The position numbers were made by a program, and so were the translations under genes. From NCBI RefSeq assembly GCF_040938485.1, contig NW_027271191.1, positions 496,001-560,000 on the forward strand: DNA of 64,000 nt. Reading direction: 5' to 3'. Below are positions 50,101 through 62,654 of the stretch, piece by piece. The notes under the pieces are model-generated. The model saw only the letters and a program-made list of their open reading frames with translations, was not told where the DNA came from and made no database searches. Numbering within the stretch: position 1 is the first letter of the stretch; each line of letters begins with the position of its first letter. This DNA is from Diadema antillarum (lineage: Eukaryota).

Positions 50101-50551
50101 TTACAATAGTGTCCTGACGACCACAATGTGTAACTTTACATTTTGGGCATCAGGTGACTTGAACCAAAATAACTGTACTTTGAACAGTCTATGAGATATG
50201 CTCACATTCATGTCACGACCCGGCCCCCCGGGCGGTACTACAGCTGTACTACTACTAGCATTTCACACCAGCGCAGCGCCAGCGGGAGCTCAGCCAACCG
50301 CAGCCGGCTAGCTGCGGGGCGGGGCTGCGTTTCGTCTAGTATGGTATTCGCTACTATGCAACCACGACTGTAGGCGATACAAATATCTACTTAAGGCACA
50401 GTCCAGATGCCACCTAAAACATAAAATAAGGAGAGTAATTTACTTACTTGGCATAATAAACTCTCCCGTCATTAGTGCTTCTCTCTTCCCATCCAGCAGG
50501 TAACTCTTCGTCGCTGTCTGTGTCGAGGAGGGTGCTCGGTGGGTCTGCCAT
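41161..50551 (-). CDS. WWOX: WW domain-containing oxidoreductase, 8 coding exons, 411 aa
   Basis: Exons on - strand: 50551-50448, 48217-48153, 47350-47293, 46683-46505, 44773-44578, 44313-44128, 43739-43481, 41349-41161. Sum is 1236 nt. WW1 [40 protein letters not shown]2 [33 protein letters not shown] motifs TGANSGIG and YGRSK, C-terminal [11 protein letters not shown]...GGMYFNHCC. Confidence 0.97.
41830..42387. mobile_element. Tc1/mariner(pogo)-like MITE (family J)
   Basis: TA|CAGTCAAACCTG...CAGGTTTGACTG|TA, with repeated ATAGCGGCCACCTGTCT subterminal motifs. Confidence 0.85.
42494..43414 (-). mobile_element. HINE-like family D element (inverted) with a nested MITE
   Basis: The ends are reverse complements of those of 20570-21527. 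It is interrupted by a family C element. Confidence 0.75.
42924..43306. mobile_element. Kolobok-like MITE (family C), nested
   Basis: TTAA|AGGGACTGTACAGTACTGG...ACTGTACACACCCT|TTAG. Confidence 0.8.
45427..45638. mobile_element. Family E MITE
   Basis: TA|CTGTAAAACCAGAAAT...ATTTCTGGTTTCACAA|TA. Confidence 0.65.
46064..46308. mobile_element. Family F MITE
   Basis: Highly similar along its length to 17723-17967. Confidence 0.8.
48617..48826. mobile_element. Family E-related MITE
   Basis: Degenerate GTGTAT...ATACAG|TA ends with TTTTCGCGAAA motifs. Confidence 0.55.
49902..49986. mobile_element. 85-bp piggyBac-type MITE
   Basis: TTAA|CCCGTTGAGGACG...CGTCTTAAACGGG|TTAA. Confidence 0.8.
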
Positions 50552-51705: not shown

Positions 51706-53579
51706 CAGGCCCCTGGGAGCAACTTTTTCCACAGGGGTGCTGAACCCCTGACCCACCCCGGTTGCCGGACCATATTAGCAGCGTTTTAGTATATTGGGGG
51801 GGGGGGGGCAGGGGAGGTGAAAGGAGGGGATGGGGACATCGAAACGAGGGTGAGAAAGCCATCTAGGTGTCTACCACACAAGGAAACTTTTGCACTCTTA
51901 TTGAAATTGAACACACTTTATGTGGTCAATTTTGACATTCTTCAATCAAAGAAAAAAAAAAGTGAATACTCGTGGACTATGTTCATGGATGAATTGCTGA
52001 ACGCCCCACCTCTTGATTCTTGTGTGTGTCTTCACTTTGTATAAGTCCATGGAAGGGGACCTACGGGGGAGGGTGTGGGAGGGGGTATCCCCCTCCCACA
52101 CTGGAGAGATTTTGAATTTTCATTCCTGAAATTCAGCGATCTGGTGCACACTTTTGGTGAAATTTCTTAAAAGTATTTAAAAAAATATTCACAGAAATGT
52201 GAATGACCATTAAATCGGGTTACAATCAACTCTTGTTCCGTGTGCGCGTCATCAATCTGACGCACACTTTTGGTGAATATTTTTAAAAAGTATGAAAATA
52301 AAATATTCACAGAAATGTGAATGACCAATAAATTGGGTTACAATCAACTCTTGTTCCATGTGTGCGTCATCACTGTGAAATAACTGTATGGAAGTTGATG
52401 AGGCGGGGATGGGAGGTGGCTACCATGCGACGGAGCTTTTGCATTTGTAGAATTTAATTACAACGATATGATGCACAATCATGGTATGGACTATCCCCAT
52501 ATATGTATCAGAGAATCGTTTGTTGGTCTTTGCTTTGTATAAGTCTATGGAAGGGGACATAAGGGGGAGGGTGTGGGAGGGGGTATCCCCCTCCCACACA
52601 AGGGAGATTTTTGATATTTAGACCTGAAATTCAGTGATTTGGTGCACACTTTTGAAATTAAAAAAAAAAGTATGAAAGATAAATATTCACAGAAATGTGA
52701 ATGACCATTAAATCGGGGTATAATCAGCTCTTGTTCTAGGTATGCATCATCACTGTGTGATAAATGTAAGGAAGTTGAGAAGGCGGGGTTGGGAGGGGGT
52801 AGCCCCCTCCCAAACGACGGAGCTTTTGCATTTTTAGAATTGGAATATACATTGTACAATGTTTAATGATCTGATGCAAAATCTTGGTGGAATATCCTGG
52901 AGTTTGTATTAGACAAGTGTATTAAGACATCTATGGAGGGAGACCAAGCGGGGGAAGGATGTGGGAGGATGTATCCCCTTCCTACAAGAGAGAGCTTTTG
53001 CATCTTTTTGACTGTGATTCAAAGATGTGGAATTTCTGGCGCATATTTTTGATTTAATATGTAATGTAATGTAGCTATAATCAATGCAAGGGGTGGAGGC
53101 TAATACAGCAAGGTGGAGGATTTTAGAAGGGGTCGTCCCCCATCCCCTAACCCCTCCCATTCGAGAGAGCCTTTGTATTTTAAGGATTGAAATGAAAATA
53201 TTTTGTCTCTACACAACAGTCATTTATGATGGAGTATTTGAAAAACTGTCAAACAAAGAAGCATAAGCCCACTAAATGTAGCAGGGGAATAAGGGTAAAC
53301 TGAAAGAGAATATCCCCTTCCCACATTTTGGAACTTTTGGATTTGTTTAAATTGAAGTGACAGATCTGGGGGGCACTTTTTGATGAAATATTCAAAAAGT
53401 GTCGATCTCAAAAGTCTACTAAGTGGATGGAAGTTGGCCTATAAGGGGGGGGGGAGGGGGTATCCCTCCCAGGGTCATTTTCCATTTTCAGAATTGAAAT
53501 TAAACGATCTTGTGCACTTTTGGTGAAATATCTGAACAGTTTCTATTTTTTTAAAAAATTAAAAATTCCACATCGTGGG

Positions 53580-53612
<33 letters not shown>

Positions 53613-54816
53613 GGGGGGGGATTGGGAGGGTGGGGGCAAAGCTTTGCATAGCTCCCACCCAATATTTTTATTCCAGGATTAATGCTATTTGGTATGAGGA
53701 AACTGTGTTATTTTTAGAATCCAATTGACATTGTCTCGCAAACACATTTTTTTGGTGGAAGTAGGGAAATAATCAATCCAAGAAGTGTACTACTACTACG
53801 TCTATGGAACGTATGGAGGGGAACTAAGCGGGGAAGTGGTTAGGGCCTAAATGAAAGGAGGATATTATATTCCCACACGAGAAAATTTATCTTGCATTTT
53901 TTGAACAGAAATGAGAGATCTTTTGATGAAAGAAATCATTCGGAGATATGCCAATCTTATGGGAAAGGACCAAAGGGGGAGGATGGGGAAGGGGGTATAA
54001 ACCCATTTTTTAGAATTGAACTGCAACAATGCCGTGCACAGTTTCGGTAAAATATTTGGACAGTTTTCCATCACAAAAAACAAGAAAATCTCCGACATCC
54101 CGAAAATCATTATTGGAGGGGGGTAATATCATGGCAACTACCCCGCACCCTTGCATACGAGGGAGCTTTTGCATTACTCTAGAATAGAAAGGAAAATATC
54201 GTGAGAGGGGGTATTTCCCTCCAATACAAGGGAGATTTCGCATTTCAGAATTGACAGGTGCACACGTTGTATGAAGATTGGGACAGTGTCGAATAAAAAA
54301 AAAATCCACATCTTGGAAATTACTGGGGGGGGGGTCAACATGATATGCTGCCCCCTCCATCGATGCTCTCCTGAAGGGGGTACCCTCCCCCTAATGAGGG
54401 AACTTCTGCATTTTTAGATTTGAAATTCAGCAATCTAGTGAGCCCTTCAGGTATAGCATATTTTTAAAAAAATCAATAGAAAAGTAGGAAAAGCAAAATA
54501 TCCAGGGACAATGGAAATGCTTTAATAGTGCTGTCTGCACTTTAAGCTTGTTCTGCGTGGGAGGGGGATACCCCTCCCACGCTATGGGGATTTCGCATTT
54601 TCAGAAGTGAAATTCAGCAATCTGATGCACACTTTGGGTGGGATATTTGGACAATTTTCTATTTAAAAAAAAGAAGCAAATTTCCCTGTAAAAAGATATA
54701 AGTTGGGGGTGCAGAAGCACCCCCAACTTTTATTTTTCACAGGGGTGCTATGCCCCCCTGCTCAAAAAGTCAGGGGTGCTGCAGCACCCCCAGCACCCCC
54801 GGCTCCCAGGGGCTTG
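51706..54816. mobile_element. Large non-autonomous hAT-type element (3111 bp) built from nested sub-repeats
   Basis: TIR CAGGCCCCTGGGAGC / GCTCCCAGGGGCTTG (14/15 match) and perfect 8-bp TSD CATTTTTC (51698-51705, 54817-54824). The interior holds many copies of GGGGTATCCCCTCCCA...TGAAATTCAGCGATCTGGTGCACACTTTTGGTGAAAT; no transposase ORF. Confidence 0.88.
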
Positions 54817-54919: not shown

Positions 54920-55163
54920 GGCACGTATTACTCCCTTATTCATATCCTTACACTTGCACTTTCATTAGGATCTGTCAGACGGAACGCGGTATCGTCATTG
55001 CTATTCGTCGAAAGTTCATTGAGAAGCAGTGCGTCACTGCGTGCCCTGGCCTCGCGTTCTTTCATTGGCTGAGCGTATTATGCAAATATGCGTGACCAAA
55101 AGTCTTTGATGACGTTTGAAGGTTACGCACGCGCACACTCTCTCTGTCTTGTTTTGGTAACAG
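54920..55163 (+). promoter_or_regulatory. Putative promoter of the kinase gene
   Basis: CpG-rich, with ATTGG (inverted CCAAT) at 55064-55068, octamer ATGCAAAT at 55080-55087 and a TGACGT site near 55109. Confidence 0.45.
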
Positions 55164-58100
55164 ATGTCGATAGGAAATGTTGTCATTAGTCCTTTGACTG
55201 ATTTAGCTTTTGACTGCACTTCGGAGCATTGGAAAGCTTTCTATTCCTTTTGCATTCAATTTTGCGAAAGAATCAGGTAAAACAGACTTTCACATGATTT
55301 CTCTTGTTTACAATACTTCTGTAGACATGTCCTTACAAGTATGTCTTTGTTACTTTAGGTTACTTTAGGTTACTACTAGGTAATCATATCCCACAAAAAT
55401 GCGTACAAGAAATTCCTGCTTTTCTGACAAGTATTTACTTTCTGTACCAGCTTGTCCCATTTTTTCATAGTAACATAAATATCATGGAGATCGTTCTTTC
55501 GCTGTTGCGGCACCGATTCTAGGGTTGAGATAGGCACTGAGCAAATGGCAAAATCTAACATACTTATCTTTAATTTAGGTCTATGGAGTTCTGCAAATTG
55601 CATAGAGAGTCTGCAAATGCCCTATAAATGCAGACTATTATCATAACCTTTCTATCTACCCATTCAAGTGTGGTTAATGCAATTATACCTGTACAGCATA
55701 ATTTCAATGGCATCTACCACAATAAACCTTGTTCATTTGTCAATTGAGATAGGATTATGGAAAAAAAATGATTTTATAGAAATACCGAACTTCTAGTCAA
55801 GTCCTAACACCTAACTCTGTTCCTAGAACCCTTTCTAGTTATATGTTCACCGTGATGTTTGATATATCGTGTACTTGTGTGGGGAAGCTATATGTAGCAT
55901 ACAAATACCATGTCCCCTAAGTAGATGAACAGAATGATGTATTGCAGCAAAATTGAATTGAACAATATGCAATGCACTTTGCTTTGTGTTTGTTTGTTCC
56001 TTATCATTGTAGGATGCCATACTTTCTTGGTTATCTTGGTTCTTGGATGGCGAATGAGACGTCTTCCATCTTCACGTCTCTCCTATGCCAAGATATCATC
56101 AAAGATGCCAGAACTAAAGCTCAGGTATATAATTATATGACACGTCCAGTCTAACATTGATTGGGTCTCTTCTTGTCCTTTCTTTTGTATATGATATATA
56201 CGCGAAATAATGTTTGGGAAATATTCTGTTGACTTCTGTTTGAAACATGCATTAGGCCTAATATAAATATCTACTCGCTTGAAAATGAATCCTCTGTACT
56301 GTTTTGAAGCCAGATACCTTACTCTTAGGTTGTTATTTTTCTCTTTTAGGCGAGTCTATTTGCACATCATTACTTGATATTCAATAAATAGATGACTGTC
56401 TGCTTGTTTCCTTTGTATTGATGGACTGTGATTCGAGGTACACACCGGAGAATGACGGATACAGGGTGTGTGGTCGCTTTCACCATGCTAGGCTGTCAGA
56501 TTGTGAATGATTGCAAAGACTGATGATTCTTTTAAGTGCAGTACGGTACCACTCTCGATTCACGTTAACTTTATGAAATGAAGTAAAACTAAATTAAAAA
56601 ATATCATAATTATAATAGCTTCATCAAAATTGGACATCAAATATTAAAGCTGTGAAATTTTTAAGTTTCACTTGGTTTGAAAGACCAGAGATAATTGCTG
56701 CAACCACACATTAGATGATCAGAGTGATGATTTCATCATATCACAGCTCTCAATTAGATTGAACACATATAAAATTTTATGTTTTGTCTATAATTCATCA
56801 ATTCAACCATTTCCATCTGGAAATAATCACTGGTATAGTATCATAGCACAACAACAATTTGATGTATTACAAATATCATCTGACTCATTCGAAGAAAATT
56901 AGTGACTTTCTGTATTCAAGTCAATAGGACTTTGTCACATTGTATGTGAGGTGATGTCACAGTCGTGACATCTATTTTGGGACTTAGTTGCCTATTTTTA
57001 TGGAAGGATGTGTCACTTCAATACCCTTTCAGTTTTTCATTTCATGTTTGATTTTTGTAGGACACGCACCATCCTGTGTTTCTGATTTTTGCTATACATG
57101 CTTACATGAAAGTCAGCTCGAACACTGAGAGCTAGGAATTGATACCATTATCTTCGAATCCCTGGGCATTGTTTGCTCGCCTTGTATCCAAGTCGTCTAT
57201 ACCGCAATAAATGAAATCAGGCTGTCATCGTCGTCTCTTTGTTTATTTCTTTCTCTATTTCACTGCAGAGATTATCTGGCTTTTTTCTGCACACACCCTT
57301 GACGGAGACCAACACCCGGCCACCATCGGACAAGTTCCCTTGTGGCTCGCTGCTTCTTAGAAGTCTTTGTGTGTTGGATAGGAAGGAAGAGACTATCAAG
57401 GTCAGTTAATTGAAATGGTATAATTGGTATTTTCGTGTAGAGTAAAGAAAAGGAGACAGCTTGCTGAATTTAATGAAATCAACGTCAATTGGCCATTATT
57501 TTGTGTTTCTGGCTCATGCTGTAGACTGCTGTATCAATGACTGACTGAAGAAAAAAAATATTCTCAGAATGGCGTCTTCGTATCGGTTTGTGTATAGTTC
57601 ATGCAATTTGATATCTTTTAAAAGAAAAAAAATGTCCAATAAAACCCCCAATTTCCCTATAGACTATACAATGATTTCGAGAAAATAAAATATAAACCGG
57701 TATGTTTTCATATTTCGCGGATGATTCTTTCACAGACAGCATGTCGGCGCAAATAGCCACATATTCGAACAAATCACGTCGCTTTAATATAGCAGTTTAT
57801 TTGTCAGTCGTGAAGATGAACTTTTAGGCGGTCTGTCGTGATGTGTTGACGTTATGAAAACTACTCCGTGTCTGAATTTTATTGACATCTATGTTTTTCA
57901 ATGTGCAGCGTCTCCACCTGATGACTGAAAGATCAAGGGAGAAGAACCAGTTTTACCAATCCTATCTCAGGGTAGGTACAATTTGCTCGTAAATGTACTA
58001 TTTTAATTGAATGAGCATAATTTTTTCACATAGTGAAAGAACACGAGAAATCTAATAGGGCCTACTTAGAAAATACATTTGTTATCTTTATTCGGTAAAA

Positions 58101-59566
58101 GAACACGAACGACAAAAGATGAATGCTGAAAGAGAAAACGAACTCCTTATATACATGGAAAAATGGACTCATTATCTTTGTGTTGACAACGACGTTTGCT
58201 CTGCTGTAAAGACAACAGATTTCAGCCAGTAATGTGCAACATAGATACGACACGATCGCATATAATCAATTTTTGTCACAGCGATGATAATAACATACTT
58301 TTTTCCCCCACAGACACTTGTGTGTACTATGAGATTGGATGATATTGCCATCAAGCTGAATGGTGGTGTACTCAAGAGAATCCCTCGTGCGTGGATGTTG
58401 AGTCGCCGAGAACTCCGCGGATCACACTCCCGGCTGGAGACGCTGCGCGCGACAGTTAGGGTAGGGAAATATGTCTCAATTTAATACTGTCTTTCTTTGC
58501 TACATCAAATAAGTTCGTGCTTTATTTCGGGTTTTAAATCTCAAGCAAATAATTTCTTTCCATGACGGTGGTTTTTGTTCAGTGAGCACACAAAAAACTT
58601 CCTCAGGTTCAGCAGAAAATGTCCATCAGTTTTATGTGACTCCCAAGAAACTGGTATTGGAGTAATGTTGTGTTGATATGATTATAGAAATGTGTTCGAG
58701 AAATATTTTCGAACACCTCTAACGATTGTCAATGATCGTTGGATAGTAATTATGGAAACTTATTTGTGACGTTTTTATTTAAACAAAGTCAATGATGCAA
58801 GAAATTAACAGAAATCGAGTTCCTTTCTTGTCGTGTACAGACAAAGGTTCTAGCTAGATAGGCACCTGCACGACAATTAATCATAACCGAAATGTCTGTC
58901 TCTGTTACAAGGACGTCGCAAAGACAATGGGCGTCGAATCACAACGCTGCGAGGAGTCTTTGCTCGTTAAGATGGCAGAGAAGTGGTCGCTGAGTCAGAG
59001 CAAGATTCAAGATCTCGAGAACAAACTTGAGATCGAGAAAGAAAAAGTGTGTCAACTTTCCAAGGATGCACTGTTGGTAAGTAGATATCCATGCTTCATT
59101 ATTAAATGCGGGTTATGGGTGCTGTGTTGTGATTAGACAGATAACCAGATTAGCCACAGTGCAGTTTTACTACCCGTTAAAACTTTCGAGTCGATGTTGT
59201 TCTTAGAATTTAAATAAGAAAGAGAACATACACGCAAGAGACTATAAGAAAAACATACCATAATACTATCATGTCGTCTTAGGAATAATCTGTATTCTCC
59301 ATTGATGTCAAGATTAGAGAAAAAAGAGTTTTCTGGGATGATAATGCAGGAGATGCCTGAAGATATAACCTTTTAGATTTCCTGATTGATAATGTGATGA
59401 TTATTGCTTGTTTTTCCTCTTTATTTGACAGAAACGAGTCGCAAGCCTTGAGCAGGCCTTGCTTGCAGAAAGCGACAAGGCCAAGCGAGCTACTCAGTGT
59501 CTTCAGGTATGAATGACGGAAGTCAATATTCTCATTCACACGAGTCAATTGAGCCTGCGCGGAAAC

Positions 59567-59605
<39 letters not shown>

Positions 59606-60791
59606 AAAGAAAAGAAAAGAAAAACACCTCAAAACAAGGGTTTGCCTATGAACTTTCCAATCAATTGATTCCATATAAAGATACCGCCTGTCGCATTCAT
59701 AAGTTCATATCATATGACTAAATGTAAGAAAAAAAAAATCGGCATTTTTGCTCTCTTCGATGGTAAGCTAGATATACACACGCCCTTTGCAAAGAAGTAG
59801 TTTTCGTTCGGGAATATAATAAGGTGTGCGTTGAATGTGAAGATACGGCAAAATTAATTTCAAATTTTGCATTTTATTGCTTGGAATTACACACACACTA
59901 AACACTGCACGACGACACTCATGTCTGCGTCCTCTTCTTTTTCGTCTTCTTCTTCTTCTTCTTCTTCTTCGTCTATAGGTTCAAAAGTGCACGCTTGCCG
60001 TCCAAACCTCACCAATCCCTGGACCTGTAGTCTATTCTCGGGGAGCTCAGACTACTTTCACTGATTTGGTGCCCTTCGACAAGTAGGTAGCAGTGTTTTT
60101 GTCGGTTTTTCACGAGAGAAAGACGCAAATTATTTTTTAAATTCTGTCTGGGTTGTTAGGAAGGATATCCTTTGATGTTCCTCATGAGTACGAGCAAGAG
60201 ACATACTTCAAGAGAATTTGAAATTGACTGAAGGGAGGAGAGCATACTTGACATAATCTGCAATATTTTGATGAAATTGATCATATTTCATTGTGCAAGT
60301 AATAAAAAACAACAACAACGCATTACCGTTTTCTATGCAATGTAACATTGTCAAACAGAGAAATACAACGATTGAAAATAATATCTTCCTCAGATCAAAT
60401 GGGGACGCTGGCACCAATACCGCACTGGGCGGTAACCTGTCAAATGTTACTATGGCCATCGAAAATGCCTGCGAGGGTGACGTCACTCTACTTTCGTCCA
60501 ATGAAATGGCAGCTTCTCCGGCACGTCTTGCTATCCACTCATCGCCTTGTAGCCCCGAGGAAGCATTCTACGACGCCCTCTCCGCACTTCCATGCCAGAT
60601 TTCGTTTTCCTTCGGGAGTGGTACAGAGTACGTTGTCGATCAATTGTGCCATTGATTATTAGTCCTATGCTCGTGTTTAGGATTTAGCATTAGAGCGTAT
60701 ATAACGGCGTGTGACGTAAGGAGAAAGATACCGTCGTCATTATTGGTATCAGTAGCATGTAAATGTCAATCTATCGATTACTATATATAAA

Positions 60792-60823
<32 letters not shown>

Positions 60824-62399
60824 AACCAAACCAAAGAAGTAAGATGAGAACAAGGAAGTTTAGTTTAATGCACAATAGCTATACTCATCTCTTCGGCATG
60901 GAAGTGGTTCTACTTCAGTGATACTATATAGGGTACCAGAGTTGACAGAAGGAACGGCCGTTAAGTTTAAAATCTAAACAGGCATCAGGCGGCAAGAGTT
61001 AGGAGTGGCAGAACATCTGAGGAGATATCAGGAAAAGGACATGCAGAAGTGTAGATGACAGTGTTACAGGCACCTCCAAGCGAGTACACGAAAGAGACCA
61101 AACTTCTGCGATAGCAAATCTTCAAGGAGTGTTGTTACAATATTTGGATTGAAAACATCAATGCTCTTTGCAGCAGAGTTATATATATTACAAAAAAATC
61201 AAACGCATAACACATTTCAGTGTACAAATACAGTGGTATATTGGCTTGGGTTTTCTTTTTGGTTTATTCATTTATTTGTTTGTTTATAAAAAATTGTTTG
61301 CTGTTGTTGTTGTCTTTCTATTTTCTCTCTAGTTCTTTTTGTTTAAACCTCTTTTCAACTTTTTTGTGTACTTCCACTCAGGAAAAAATCGGCAGCCAAG
61401 CCATCCAAGGCCTCCCTAGAGGTTGTCGACTCTCTCCAAGCTGTCATCCTTACTTTAAATAATGACAACCCCAGCTTTGACGCGGCAAGCACAAACTCTC
61501 AGAGATTCATTCCAAAGAACCTATCTGCCAGAGGTCTCATGGTAAGGAGTACTTCTGATCTTCTTCCCTGGGGCGCGTCTGGAGACGAGGTTGAACTTGG
61601 TAGTGGTACTACCGGCACAGTTTACCTCTATGCTCATGCAATTAGCCACCGCCCTGTTGCGCTCAAAGTCATGTCAGTTCCGCCAAAAGATTTCTGCAGA
61701 GAGGACAGGCGACAAGTGATCAGAAAATTGAAGCAAGAAGTTCAGATTCTGACTGCCCTCGGCAACAAAGACTGGTTTCCCGAGTTCTACGGCTGCATCA
61801 AAGTCGGACCAGATACGGTTGGTATTGCCATGGAGTTCTGCGGAGATGAATCCAAGGGGAAGAGCTACTCCATCGCCGATTGTTTGGAAAGAAATGGACC
61901 CCATCTCAGCAGGGATGACTGGATGGGAGTCATGCAGGATGTGGCTGACGGATTGACCGTGATGCACAGGAGGGGTTTCCTATGCAACGATCTCAAAGAG
62001 GACAATGTGCTAGTGGTAGAGTCGGAAGAAGAATGGGGCGTGAAGATCGTTGATTTTGGTTGGTCCAGCAGTATCAACAGGCCTCTCAGACTTCGGTTCA
62101 CTGCATCACAGAAGCAAAGTTACAAAGACGAGCAGCTCTACAGTCAAATTGCCCCGGAATGTGCCCTAGACGGGAAACCATGCTCGGTTTCCAGCGACGT
62201 ATACGCCCTGGGCAGATTGACTGCCTTCGTCGGGCAGCGAATGGGACTGAAGGACCTGGAGGACTTTGGAATGTACATTTACCAGTGCCCCAGGGAGAAG
62301 AGGCCATCACTGAAGGACTACATCGCCGAAGTCACTTGCCTCAGGAATGGCGGCAGCGTGGGCAGTGAGAGCAGCGATGACAGTGACGAGGATTTGTGA
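55164..62399 (+). CDS. Putative multi-exon coiled-coil + Ser/Thr protein kinase gene (about 720 aa), family not recognised
   Basis: GT-AG exons, all open and phase-compatible: 55164-55276 (phase 2), 56013-56124, 57269-57400, 57909-57971, 58314-58460, 58912-59076, 59432-59506 (all phase 0), 59979-60082 (phase 2), 60394-60627 (phase 2), 61382-62399. Sum is 2163 nt = 720 aa + stop. The middle exons encode heptad-like KIQDLENKLEIEKEKVCQLSKDALLKRVASLEQALLAES. The N-terminal exons are supported only by splice and phase consistency. A weak optional phase-0 exon may lie at 57061-57111. Confidence 0.6.
59568..59622. repeat. (AAAG)n microsatellite
   Basis: Directly visible; a second (AAAG)n lies at about 60790-60826. 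Confidence 0.9.
61382..62399 (+). CDS. Terminal exon encoding an entire protein kinase domain
   Basis: The acceptor cttccactcag ends at 61381, and the frame is continuous with ORF 61539-62399. Motifs: GSGTTGTV (Gly loop), VALK, alphaC E (KQEVQIL), CNDLKEDN, DFG, APE, SDVYALG, KRPS, then an acidic tail SESSDDSDEDL. Confidence 0.9.
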
Positions 62400-62648: not shown

Positions 62649-62654
62649 AATAAA
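62649..62654 (+). terminator. Candidate polyA signal of the kinase gene
   Basis: AATAAA 250 nt after the stop codon at 62399. Confidence 0.5.

Follow-up and report, generated by a model that had tools for sequence, protein, structure and literature searches.

An apparently intronless kinase of Diadema antillarum is probably the last exon of a ten-exon gene in an echinoderm-expanded kinase family

Kinases peculiar to sea urchins were described in the Strongylocentrotus purpuratus kinome, in which 21 'urchin-specific' kinases were placed in the Other group (Bradham et al. 2006, summarised in PMC4883820); they lack homologues at family level in model organisms, and no function is known for them. 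The kinase described in this study, from Diadema antillarum, likewise showed no preference for any single solved group of kinases. Unlike what the 'urchin-specific' label implies, its family reached crinoids, one sea star and, through a kinase-domain relative, the brachiopod Lingula. Closer counterparts were three camarodont urchin proteins that RefSeq calls 'uncharacterized', encoded by LOC129271265 of Lytechinus pictus (XP_054764622.1, 631 aa), LOC121423518 of L. variegatus (641 aa) and LOC105436755 of S. purpuratus (XP_011660961.1, 635 aa). The remaining systems for comparison were paralogous Diadema kinases (e.g., D. setosum XP_072178705.1, 763 aa) with the wider echinoderm family, and the clients of VAP that carry an FFAT motif, such as ORP1L, OSBP and CERT.

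Within the window (the whole 64,000-nucleotide stretch of DNA analysed), the track of open reading frames alone gave only a 286-aa kinase without introns (61539-62399). The sequence-only reading had proposed that nine upstream GT-AG exons chain in phase into the kinase exon to give 2163 nt, and an exon-by-exon reconstruction recovered all ten, with the same 2163-nt total, AG/GT borders, good polypyrimidine tracts and no stop in the chained phase. The 286-aa frame sat inside the last exon. We put at roughly 0.75 the probability of the full explanation preferred here, in which the supposed intronless kinase forms the final exon of a genuine sea-urchin gene with ten exons on the plus strand, encoding about 680-720 aa with a coiled coil, an FFAT-like linker and a C-terminal kinase that would work by the mechanism proposed below. 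The components of the model were as follows:

55164-55276, plus strand: exon 1 under the ATG 55164 model; probably 5'UTR or an optional extension of the N-terminus
56013-56124, plus strand: exon 2; ATG 56014 is the likely family-conserved start, followed by the motif LLCQDIIKDAR
57269-57400, plus strand: exon 3, 132 nt, phase 0-0, putatively coding
57909-57971, plus strand: exon 4, 63 nt, phase 0-0, putatively coding
58314-58460, plus strand: exon 5, coding, containing Met 58329
58912-59076, plus strand: exon 6, 165 nt, phase 0-0, one full coiled-coil module of about 54 aa
59432-59506, plus strand: exon 7, half a module that continues the coiled coil
59979-60082, plus strand: exon 8, where the linker begins; holds a degenerate FYDA copy
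60394-60627, plus strand: exon 9, Ser/Pro-rich disordered linker with the FFAT-like motif SPEEAFYDALS at 60551-60583
61382-62399, plus strand: exon 10, a 52-aa leader, then the whole kinase domain, then an acidic tail
62649-62654, plus strand: first AATAAA past the stop codon, a possible poly(A) signal from a pattern scan

A search for transcript-derived fragments with exon 9 found none.

By sequence comparison, the Diadema gene is the orthologue of the three camarodont genes. Among 1.84 billion representatives, their orthogroup gave the best kinase match outside Diadema, at 51% identity, and searching in the opposite direction placed the D. setosum orthologue directly after the three camarodont proteins; paralogous kinases of the gene's own genome reached only 39-44%. 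Exons 6-10 were colinear with the 631-641-aa proteins of Lytechinus and Strongylocentrotus, and exons 6, 8 and 9 aligned in order with all three (z-scores 5-6). Against the L. pictus protein, the exon 5 alignment was colinear but weak (residues about 69-117), exon 6 matched residues 118-170 (z=6) and exon 8 aligned to residues 226-250 (z=5.6). Exon 6 also matched module exons that stand in tandem at four paralogue loci, and exon 7 matched paralogue modules and had its counterpart in an 81-nt exon of L. variegatus. In the AF2 model of the orthologue, residues 132-220 formed a long helix, the FYDA region was disordered and the kinase was modelled with confidence; together with these module matches, this bore out the coiled coil that had been read from exons 6 and 7; the proposed Ser/Pro-rich linker was likewise present, as low-complexity sequence in exons 8 and 9. 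The two groups of genes share the order of module exon, coiled coil, FYDA linker, leader helix, kinase and acidic DSDED tail, as well as the exon layout seen in L. variegatus, where a module exon measures 162-165 nt and one exon holds the kinase. They differ in the number of FYDA motifs, one in Diadema against four in camarodonts, and the Diadema gene also has one coiled-coil half-module fewer, an intron that splits the linker exon, and a first 150-190 aa (exons 1/2-5) that cannot be aligned with the camarodont N-terminus.

That the exon chain is more than an accident followed from cross-species conservation and not from its open phase. Nine phase-compatible open exons had been thought unlikely by chance, a point that did not hold, as a dynamic-programming count still gave 1e13-1e14 stop-free, in-phase GT-AG chains of nine exons when the same 6.3 kb was shuffled with its composition kept, and intron 9 alone offered 77 in-phase open AG..GT candidates. 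Such abundance, along with an ORF track that contains the kinase alone, speaks for a reading in which open GT-AG segments fell together by chance in the upstream chain and nothing but the 286-aa intronless kinase is real. Against D. setosum, however, all ten exons were 92-99% identical while flanking introns were 62-85%, exonic indels were of 3 nt only, and 19 of the 20 splice dinucleotides were kept; the nine upstream exons stood out as blocks of raised conservation, each ranking by identity among the top 0.2-10% of background intervals of equal length. Exons 5-8 (dN/dS 0.17, Fisher p=1.4e-6) and exon 10 (dN/dS 0.21, p=4e-7) are, judged by these substitutions, under clear purifying selection, with 8 synonymous and 2 non-synonymous changes in exon 5 (dN/dS 0.08), 3 and 0 in exon 7, and a dN/dS of 0.13 in exon 8. 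Homologues of exons 2, 6, 8 and 9 and the alignment with the L. pictus orthologue pointed the same way, and the exon 9/10 junction was already present in a 396-aa D. setosum RefSeq protein. Chance assembly was thereby effectively refuted and is exceedingly improbable, and the hidden multi-exon gene joining upstream exons to the kinase was upheld. A division into two genes is less remote but still unlikely. RefSeq splits the D. setosum locus into a 159-aa product, which starts at the exon 5 Met (58329) and ends 4 nt into intron 8, and the 396-aa product, which starts inside exon 9; a small coiled-coil protein from exons 5-8 followed by a kinase of the 396-aa type from the exon 9 Met would match these two exactly, and read-through of the exon 8 donor does reach a stop after one codon. 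Weighing against such a division, the coiled coil, linker and kinase lie in one ORF in many paralogues and in the three camarodont RefSeq orthologues, where that ORF also spans the FYDA motifs, and the exon 8 donor, exon 9 acceptor and phase are conserved in both Diadema genomes. Exon 9 is moreover open upstream of its internal Met, begins at a good acceptor and has no conserved promoter-like block before it.

As for the start codon, it is possible, although we consider it the less probable case, that the gene is the same but that exons 1-4 are non-coding 5'UTR, perhaps alternatively spliced, with translation starting at Met 58329 to give about 575 aa, as in the D. setosum RefSeq CDS. Relative to D. 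setosum, exons 1-4 had 5 synonymous and 9 non-synonymous changes and no coding signature; all codon positions were equally conserved, with dS 0.058 (about 0.13-0.20 elsewhere) and a non-significant dN/dS of 0.48. The one lost splice site was the exon 2 acceptor (AA in D. setosum), where the shifted acceptor breaks the exon 1 frame, and the 3' part of exon 4 with its donor has been expanded there into a minisatellite of 42 copies of 38 nt. The exon 3 region was open in several frames, and camarodont orthologues had no counterpart of exons 1-4. Opposed to this, exon 2 was 99% identical to D. setosum, and its peptide motif and its layout of acceptor AG, one base and ATG were found upstream and on the same strand at 6/6 paralogue loci, whose kinases are only about 40% identical, which a UTR would not readily account for; a paralogue-derived HMM matched exon 2 at E=5.9e-5 (next match 0.33). 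Exons 3 (96% identity, flanks 76%, splice sites kept) and 4 (97%, flanks 74%) are multiples of three, stop-free and in phase 0-0 in both Diadema species, and exon 3 equals in length the exon of 132 nt that paralogues carry next after their exon-2-like exon. Exon 1 was 92-94% identical, with its donor kept and a 3-nt indel as its only one, and contained 2 of 21 haplotype differences. Within the ten-exon model, exon 1 is probably 5'UTR, and ATG 56014, giving 682 aa, is the more likely start, fitting the family and D. setosum better than ATG 55164. The chain of exons in the earlier proposal was retained, and its start at ATG 55164, and therefore its length of about 720 aa, became doubtful.

The kinase domain scored 83.8 bits against Pfam Pkinase PF00069 (cut-off 31.7), and exon 10 was 94% identical to the D. 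setosum protein. Its main motifs were:

61596-61622, plus strand: glycine-rich loop (GSGTTG), exon 10
61656-61670, plus strand: lysine (VALK), exon 10
61980-62006, plus strand: catalytic loop CNDLKEDN, exon 10
62052-62066, plus strand: DFG, exon 10
62148-62162, plus strand: APE, exon 10

With the alphaC Glu (KQEVQ), the catalytic set was complete, from the Gly-rich loop and beta3 Lys to the catalytic Asp and Asn, the DFG Asp and APE. The catalytic columns were invariant or nearly so across 30 family members, the family invariants being K, E, N, D, N and D. The motif C-N-D replaces HRD, and Asn was invariant at the Arg column of the family alignment; it is therefore a non-RD kinase, of active-looking type. 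The family profile matched JAK, TNIK/MINK, BRAF, MST and IRAK4 alike (E-values 1e-20 to 1e-27), and Foldseek returned Src, JAK2, MST3 and IRAK4 alike. Assignment to a named group (TKL, STE, TK or others) was rejected, as none was clearly better by sequence or structure.

The linker upstream of the kinase resembles known VAP clients. The exon 9 core AFYDALS was identical in 6/7 positions to the ORP1L core EFYDALS and has the features of a seven-residue FFAT core, an aromatic pair at positions 2-3 followed by Asp (4) and Ala (5); the D. setosum equivalent was AYYDALS. Acidic and phosphorylatable residues precede the core, and its surroundings were disordered in the AF2 model of the orthologue, where residues 223-306 had a pLDDT below 50; this setting may resemble that of such clients. 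The differences are an Ala in place of Glu/Asp at position 1, a short acidic tract (only two Glu, plus Ser-Pro sites) and a host that is a kinase and not a lipid-transfer protein, and VAP binding is a prediction. The motif occurred in four copies in each camarodont orthologue, its position in a linker upstream of the kinase domain was confined to this orthogroup among 173 proteins compared, and the genome contains an MSP-domain gene.

Upstream of the gene, three features were located:

50444-50551, minus strand: first coding exon of WWOX, an ORF from Met with the start codon and the beginning of the WW domain
51707-54815, strand not assigned: young multi-copy transposable-element insertion between WWOX and the kinase gene, outside the latter
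55007-55163, plus strand: conserved promoter/5'UTR block directly upstream of exon 1, a putative promoter judging from its motifs

The proposed head-to-head placement with WWOX was thus found in the window, and in D. setosum a called WW/adh_short gene adjoins the kinase locus at the syntenic position; no match to WWOX exon 1 occurred within 10 kb of the L. variegatus orthologue. The insertion was missing from D. setosum, did not align in the twin haplotype and had at least 20 further copies in the genome at 97-99% identity. The block at 55007-55163 was about 97% identical to D. setosum (100% in its last 60 nt) and contained three motifs: CCAAT in reverse (55064), the octamer ATGCAAAT (55080) and a CRE-like TGACGT (55110).

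In the preferred explanation, transcription would run divergently from WWOX, out of the conserved block just upstream of 55164. Exon 1 is most likely untranslated and exons 2-5 would encode a poorly conserved, probably disordered N-terminus; exons 6 and 7 encode a helical coiled coil made of the family's exon module of about 54 aa, exons 8 and 9 a disordered Ser/Pro/acidic linker with one FFAT-like motif, and the single exon 10 a C-terminal Ser/Thr kinase with its catalytic residues all in place and Asn for the HRD arginine. Gene structure, conservation and homology are shown by the comparisons above, whereas the mechanism is inferred. The coiled coil could dimerise the protein and bring two kinase domains together for trans-activation, while the FFAT-like motif may dock it on the VAP MSP domain at the ER surface.

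The sequence-only reading had regarded the gene as an orphan, restricted to its lineage, with a novel and non-homologous N-terminus. Exons 2, 6, 7, 8 and 9 have relatives, and non-homology outside Diadema stood only for exons 1, 3, 4 and nearly 5: no homologue of exon 1 or exon 3 was detectable there, nor any relative of exons 3-5 (about 114 aa) aside from the weak exon 5 match. In paralogues of the gene's own genome, the single kinase exon is preceded, on its own strand, by a first exon resembling exon 2 and by 3-4 module exons. Like these paralogues and the wider family, the gene has a single-exon kinase domain, an invariant Asn for the HRD Arg, N-terminal helical modules of about 54 aa (in tandem in the family) on 162-165-nt phase-0 exons and a first exon with a related short motif. 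The Diadema paralogues differ in kinases only 39-44% identical to this one, in having 4-6 modules against about 1.5, and in their want of an FYDA/FFAT-like motif. Tandem coiled-coil modules precede the single kinase exon in the paralogues, and the architecture is therefore typical of the family and not that of an orphan; a long coiled-coil N-terminus with a C-terminal kinase was common in urchins, crinoids and a sea star. By these comparisons, the gene belongs to a large, uncharacterised, echinoderm-expanded kinase family, and it adds a further member, with orthologues annotated in other urchins, to a kind already known but unstudied.

The ten exons of the coiled-coil kinase gene were rebuilt from the lengths and anchor coordinates of the sequence-only reading. 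All ten had AG/GT borders and decent polypyrimidine tracts, and every exon was stop-free in the chained phase over a summed length of 2163 nt, which confirmed the in-phase GT-AG series that had been proposed. The 286-aa ORF of exon 10 matched Pfam Pkinase at 83.8 bits, identifying it as a kinase domain, and a RefSeq protein from Diadema setosum shared 94% identity with the product of the last exon. Conservation in D. setosum and the presence of homologues bore out a hidden multi-exon kinase gene.

Exons of the kinase gene and the adjoining WWOX exon (window positions; exons 1-10 by AG/GT-chain reconstruction)
55164-55276, + strand, exon 1, as modelled from ATG 55164
56013-56124, + strand, exon 2
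57269-57400, + strand, exon 3
57909-57971, + strand, exon 4
58314-58460, + strand, exon 5
58912-59076, + strand, exon 6
59432-59506, + strand, exon 7
59979-60082, + strand, exon 8
60394-60627, + strand, exon 9
61382-62399, + strand, exon 10, kinase ORF
50444-50551, - strand, WWOX exon 1, adjoining the kinase gene

As WWOX exon 1 lies on the minus strand, the head-to-head arrangement was right. Between the two genes, a 3.1-kb transposable-element insertion (51707-54815) was missing in D. setosum and did not align in the twin haplotype, and at least 20 genome copies shared 97-99% identity; it is a young insertion in a bidirectional promoter region and probably still polymorphic. The genome is a two-haplotype, 1.75-Gb assembly with a twin locus on another contig, and the haplotype differences (21 in 8 kb) were too sparse to serve as a coding test.

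It had been argued that nine open, in-phase exons are unlikely by chance. This was not borne out, as a dynamic-programming count on composition shuffles of the same 6.3 kb gave 1e13-1e14 nine-exon GT-AG, stop-free, phase-compatible chains, and intron 9 alone held 77 in-phase open AG..GT candidates. In the exon 3 region (57211-57409), two plus-strand frames and one minus-strand frame (a 60-aa ORF at 57217-57399) were open, so openness alone says little there. When the orthologous D. setosum locus (L001) was aligned to the window, all ten exons were 92-99% identical, against 62-85% for the introns, with just two exonic indels, both of 3 nt. The exons were open in both species, and 19 of the 20 splice dinucleotides were kept. 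Against background intervals of equal length, each upstream exon ranked within the top 0.2-10%, and each coincided with a block of 95% or higher identity. Judged by this cross-species conservation instead of the phase-openness argument, the exon chain is real. Blocks of at least 95% identity also lay in the introns (55925-55990, 56278-56490, 56794-56937, 59752-59818 and 60706-61042); a search of the conserved intron-9 blocks (60706-61042) for a cassette exon gave many chance candidates and no convincing one.

Nei-Gojobori counts against D. setosum, with the exons grouped as 1-4, 5-8, 9 and 10, showed purifying selection in exons 5-8 (dN/dS 0.17; 20 synonymous and 12 non-synonymous changes, Fisher p=1.4e-6; dS 0.196, similar to introns) and in exon 10 (dN/dS 0.21, p=4e-7). 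Exon 9 had a dN/dS of 0.45, which was not significant. The coding signature did not extend to exons 1-4 (dN/dS 0.48), where five synonymous and nine non-synonymous changes and a dS of just 0.058 indicated even conservation at all codon positions. By these counts, exons 1-4 are under constraint, though not demonstrably as protein. In D. setosum, the region orthologous to window 57936-57981 (L001 5633-7233) was occupied by 42 tandem copies of a 38-nt unit, which comprises the final 36 nt of exon 4 and the donor site. The array yields 42 identical donors; the window has one copy.

The chain was open from ATG 55164, which had been proposed as the start of a protein of about 720 aa; the paralogues and the D. 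setosum acceptor pointed to a later start. Exon 2 opens with AG, one base and ATG, and six of six paralogue loci had the same layout upstream of the kinase, followed by a related peptide with a QDII..AR-type motif at its end. An HMM built from the paralogue first-exon peptides matched exon 2 with E=5.9e-5, the next match being at 0.33. The exon 2 acceptor is AA in D. setosum, where the sole nearby AG lies one base further 3'. Splicing to that AG would disrupt the frame from exon 1 and leave the exon 2 ATG unaffected. From this layout, motif and acceptor shift, ATG 56014 was taken as the more likely start (682 aa), and exon 1 is more likely a 5'UTR or an optional extension. The 60 nt immediately 5' of ATG 55164 were 100% conserved in D. 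setosum and carried CCAAT, octamer and CRE-like motifs, making this block probably a promoter. Exons 3 and 4 (132 nt and 63 nt, each phase 0-0) would be coding if exons 2 and 5 both are; being symmetric in phase and conserved at every codon position, they could also be conserved alternative cassette exons. Paralogue and camarodont N-termini searched against the six-frame window gave no match on exons 1, 3, 4 or 5.

The D. setosum RefSeq annotation splits the locus at exon 8/9 into two products (L001 7914-9626 and 10001-12007), which put junction 60082/60394 in question. Its 159-aa product begins at the exon 5 Met and runs on through four bases of intron 8 to a stop, and its 396-aa product begins at the exon 9 Met and is spliced to exon 10, confirming junction 60627/61382. 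Two separate gene products were less favoured, however, as the camarodont orthologues are single ORFs: the closest relative outside Diadema in an exhaustive HMMER search was a 631-aa Lytechinus pictus protein (XP_054764622.1) with a C-terminal kinase (51% identity), and further orthologues were found in L. variegatus (641 aa) and S. purpuratus (635 aa), all named "uncharacterized". Exons 6, 8 and 9 aligned colinearly to residues 118-170, 226-250 and 243-261 of the L. pictus orthologue with z-scores of 5-6, and exon 5 aligned weakly at the correct position. The L. variegatus locus (LOC121423518) was organised like the Diadema gene: a module exon of 162 nt was followed by one of 81 nt and then by a linker exon, and the kinase lay on one exon. 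Paralogue modules are also joined to the kinase in a 763-aa D. setosum RefSeq protein, and neither Diadema genome has lost the exon 8 donor, the exon 9 acceptor or the phase. A single gene is therefore favoured by orthologues, paralogues and splice sites, and the two-product annotation is likely a mis-split gene model. Junctions other than 9/10 are supported by conservation and homology; the exon 9 peptide, used as a word-search query for transcript-derived fragments, matched none.

The earlier description of an orphan gene with a non-homologous N-terminus proved largely wrong, as exons 6, 8 and 9 and the exon 2 motif have relatives. Four same-genome paralogue loci carried three to four exon-6-like segments on the kinase strand and 1.5-4 kb 5' of the kinase exon, as phase-0 exons of 162-165 nt each coding a helical module of about 54 aa. 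Such exons stood in tandem at paralogue loci L021 (5561-7409), L023 (4851-6604) and L024 (5606-7644), where the module, a short helix, loop and long helix, forms an exon-duplication repeat without a Pfam model. In a local search, the best exon-6-like module outside the locus (G000 C101:752660-752821; L027 2661-2822; E=6e-6) was not followed by a kinase exon over the next 7 kb, and may be a module-only gene or have a more distant kinase exon. With both haplotypes counted, the diploid assembly contained at least 72 matches to the kinase exon. Each was a single exon, and several stood in tandem arrays; paralogue arrays at G000 C837:376657-412503 and C655:979135-996338 had a spacing of about 8.5 kb. 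Crinoids, a sea star and other urchins also had relatives with long coiled-coil N-termini, and Lingula had a kinase-domain relative. By homology, the gene belongs to a known, uncharacterised family of echinoderm coiled-coil kinases. The oyster kinome paper (PMC4883820, citing Bradham et al. 2006) reports that 21 kinases in the S. purpuratus kinome, placed in the Other group, are "urchin-specific", of unknown function and with weak embryonic expression.

Pfam assigned no family to the nine upstream exon peptides (the lone row, DUF4940 at E=0.068, was below cut-off) and gave just sub-threshold coiled-coil look-alikes (Striatin, Myosin_tail) for the N-termini of six homologues; an ESM Atlas feature search with the L. 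pictus orthologue N-terminus returned no usable match. The Diadema exons were searched individually, and the L. pictus orthologue was folded with a 30-sequence alignment as a proxy for the Diadema protein.

Segments of the L. pictus orthologue model
Residues 1-98, low confidence
Residues 99-122, helix
Residues 132-220, 89-residue helix, pLDDT 74-88
Residues 223-306, disordered
Residues 307-325, helix
Residues 345-622, kinase, pLDDT above 90

The kinase retained the Gly loop, Lys, Glu, catalytic Asp and Asn, DFG and APE, with Asn at the RD-kinase Arg position, invariant across the family alignment. By sequence and by fold, it was no closer to one solved kinase group than to the others. An MLKL/RIPK-like reading, a helical N-terminus with a kinase, was dropped, as sequence and fold showed no preference for that group. 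We infer that the protein dimerises and is catalytically active.

Exon 9 contains SPEEAFYDALS, comparable to SEDEFYDALSD, the FFAT motif of ORP1L (FFAT motifs bind the MSP domain of VAP). The D. setosum version is AYYDALS, and all three camarodont orthologues had four E-x-[FY]-Y-D-A copies each in the disordered linker. Among 173 proteins compared, a linker FYDA motif preceding the kinase domain was limited to this orthogroup, and the genome contains an MSP-domain gene. VAP docking through this motif is offered as a reasoned hypothesis. Under it, the FFAT-like array (one in Diadema, four per camarodont) in the disordered linker would tether a non-RD kinase, dimerised by its coiled coil, to the ER surface. 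That the orthogroup is a VAP-docked ER-contact-site kinase, and the surrounding echinoderm expansion, with its tandem arrays and exon-module shuffling, a fast-evolving signalling or immune-type repertoire analogous to non-RD IRAK/RIPK-type kinases, we consider doubtful, at a probability of about 0.2.

The gene reveals no new kind of system. The gene model is corrected, where an ORF scan shows just an intronless kinase and the sister-species RefSeq gives two products. One orthogroup of a large, unstudied echinoderm kinase expansion gains a name and an architecture in which a non-RD kinase is accompanied by an FFAT-like motif and by coiled-coil modules that are exon-encoded. With it comes a cheaply testable hypothesis in which VAP/ER docking would be combined with coiled-coil-driven activation.
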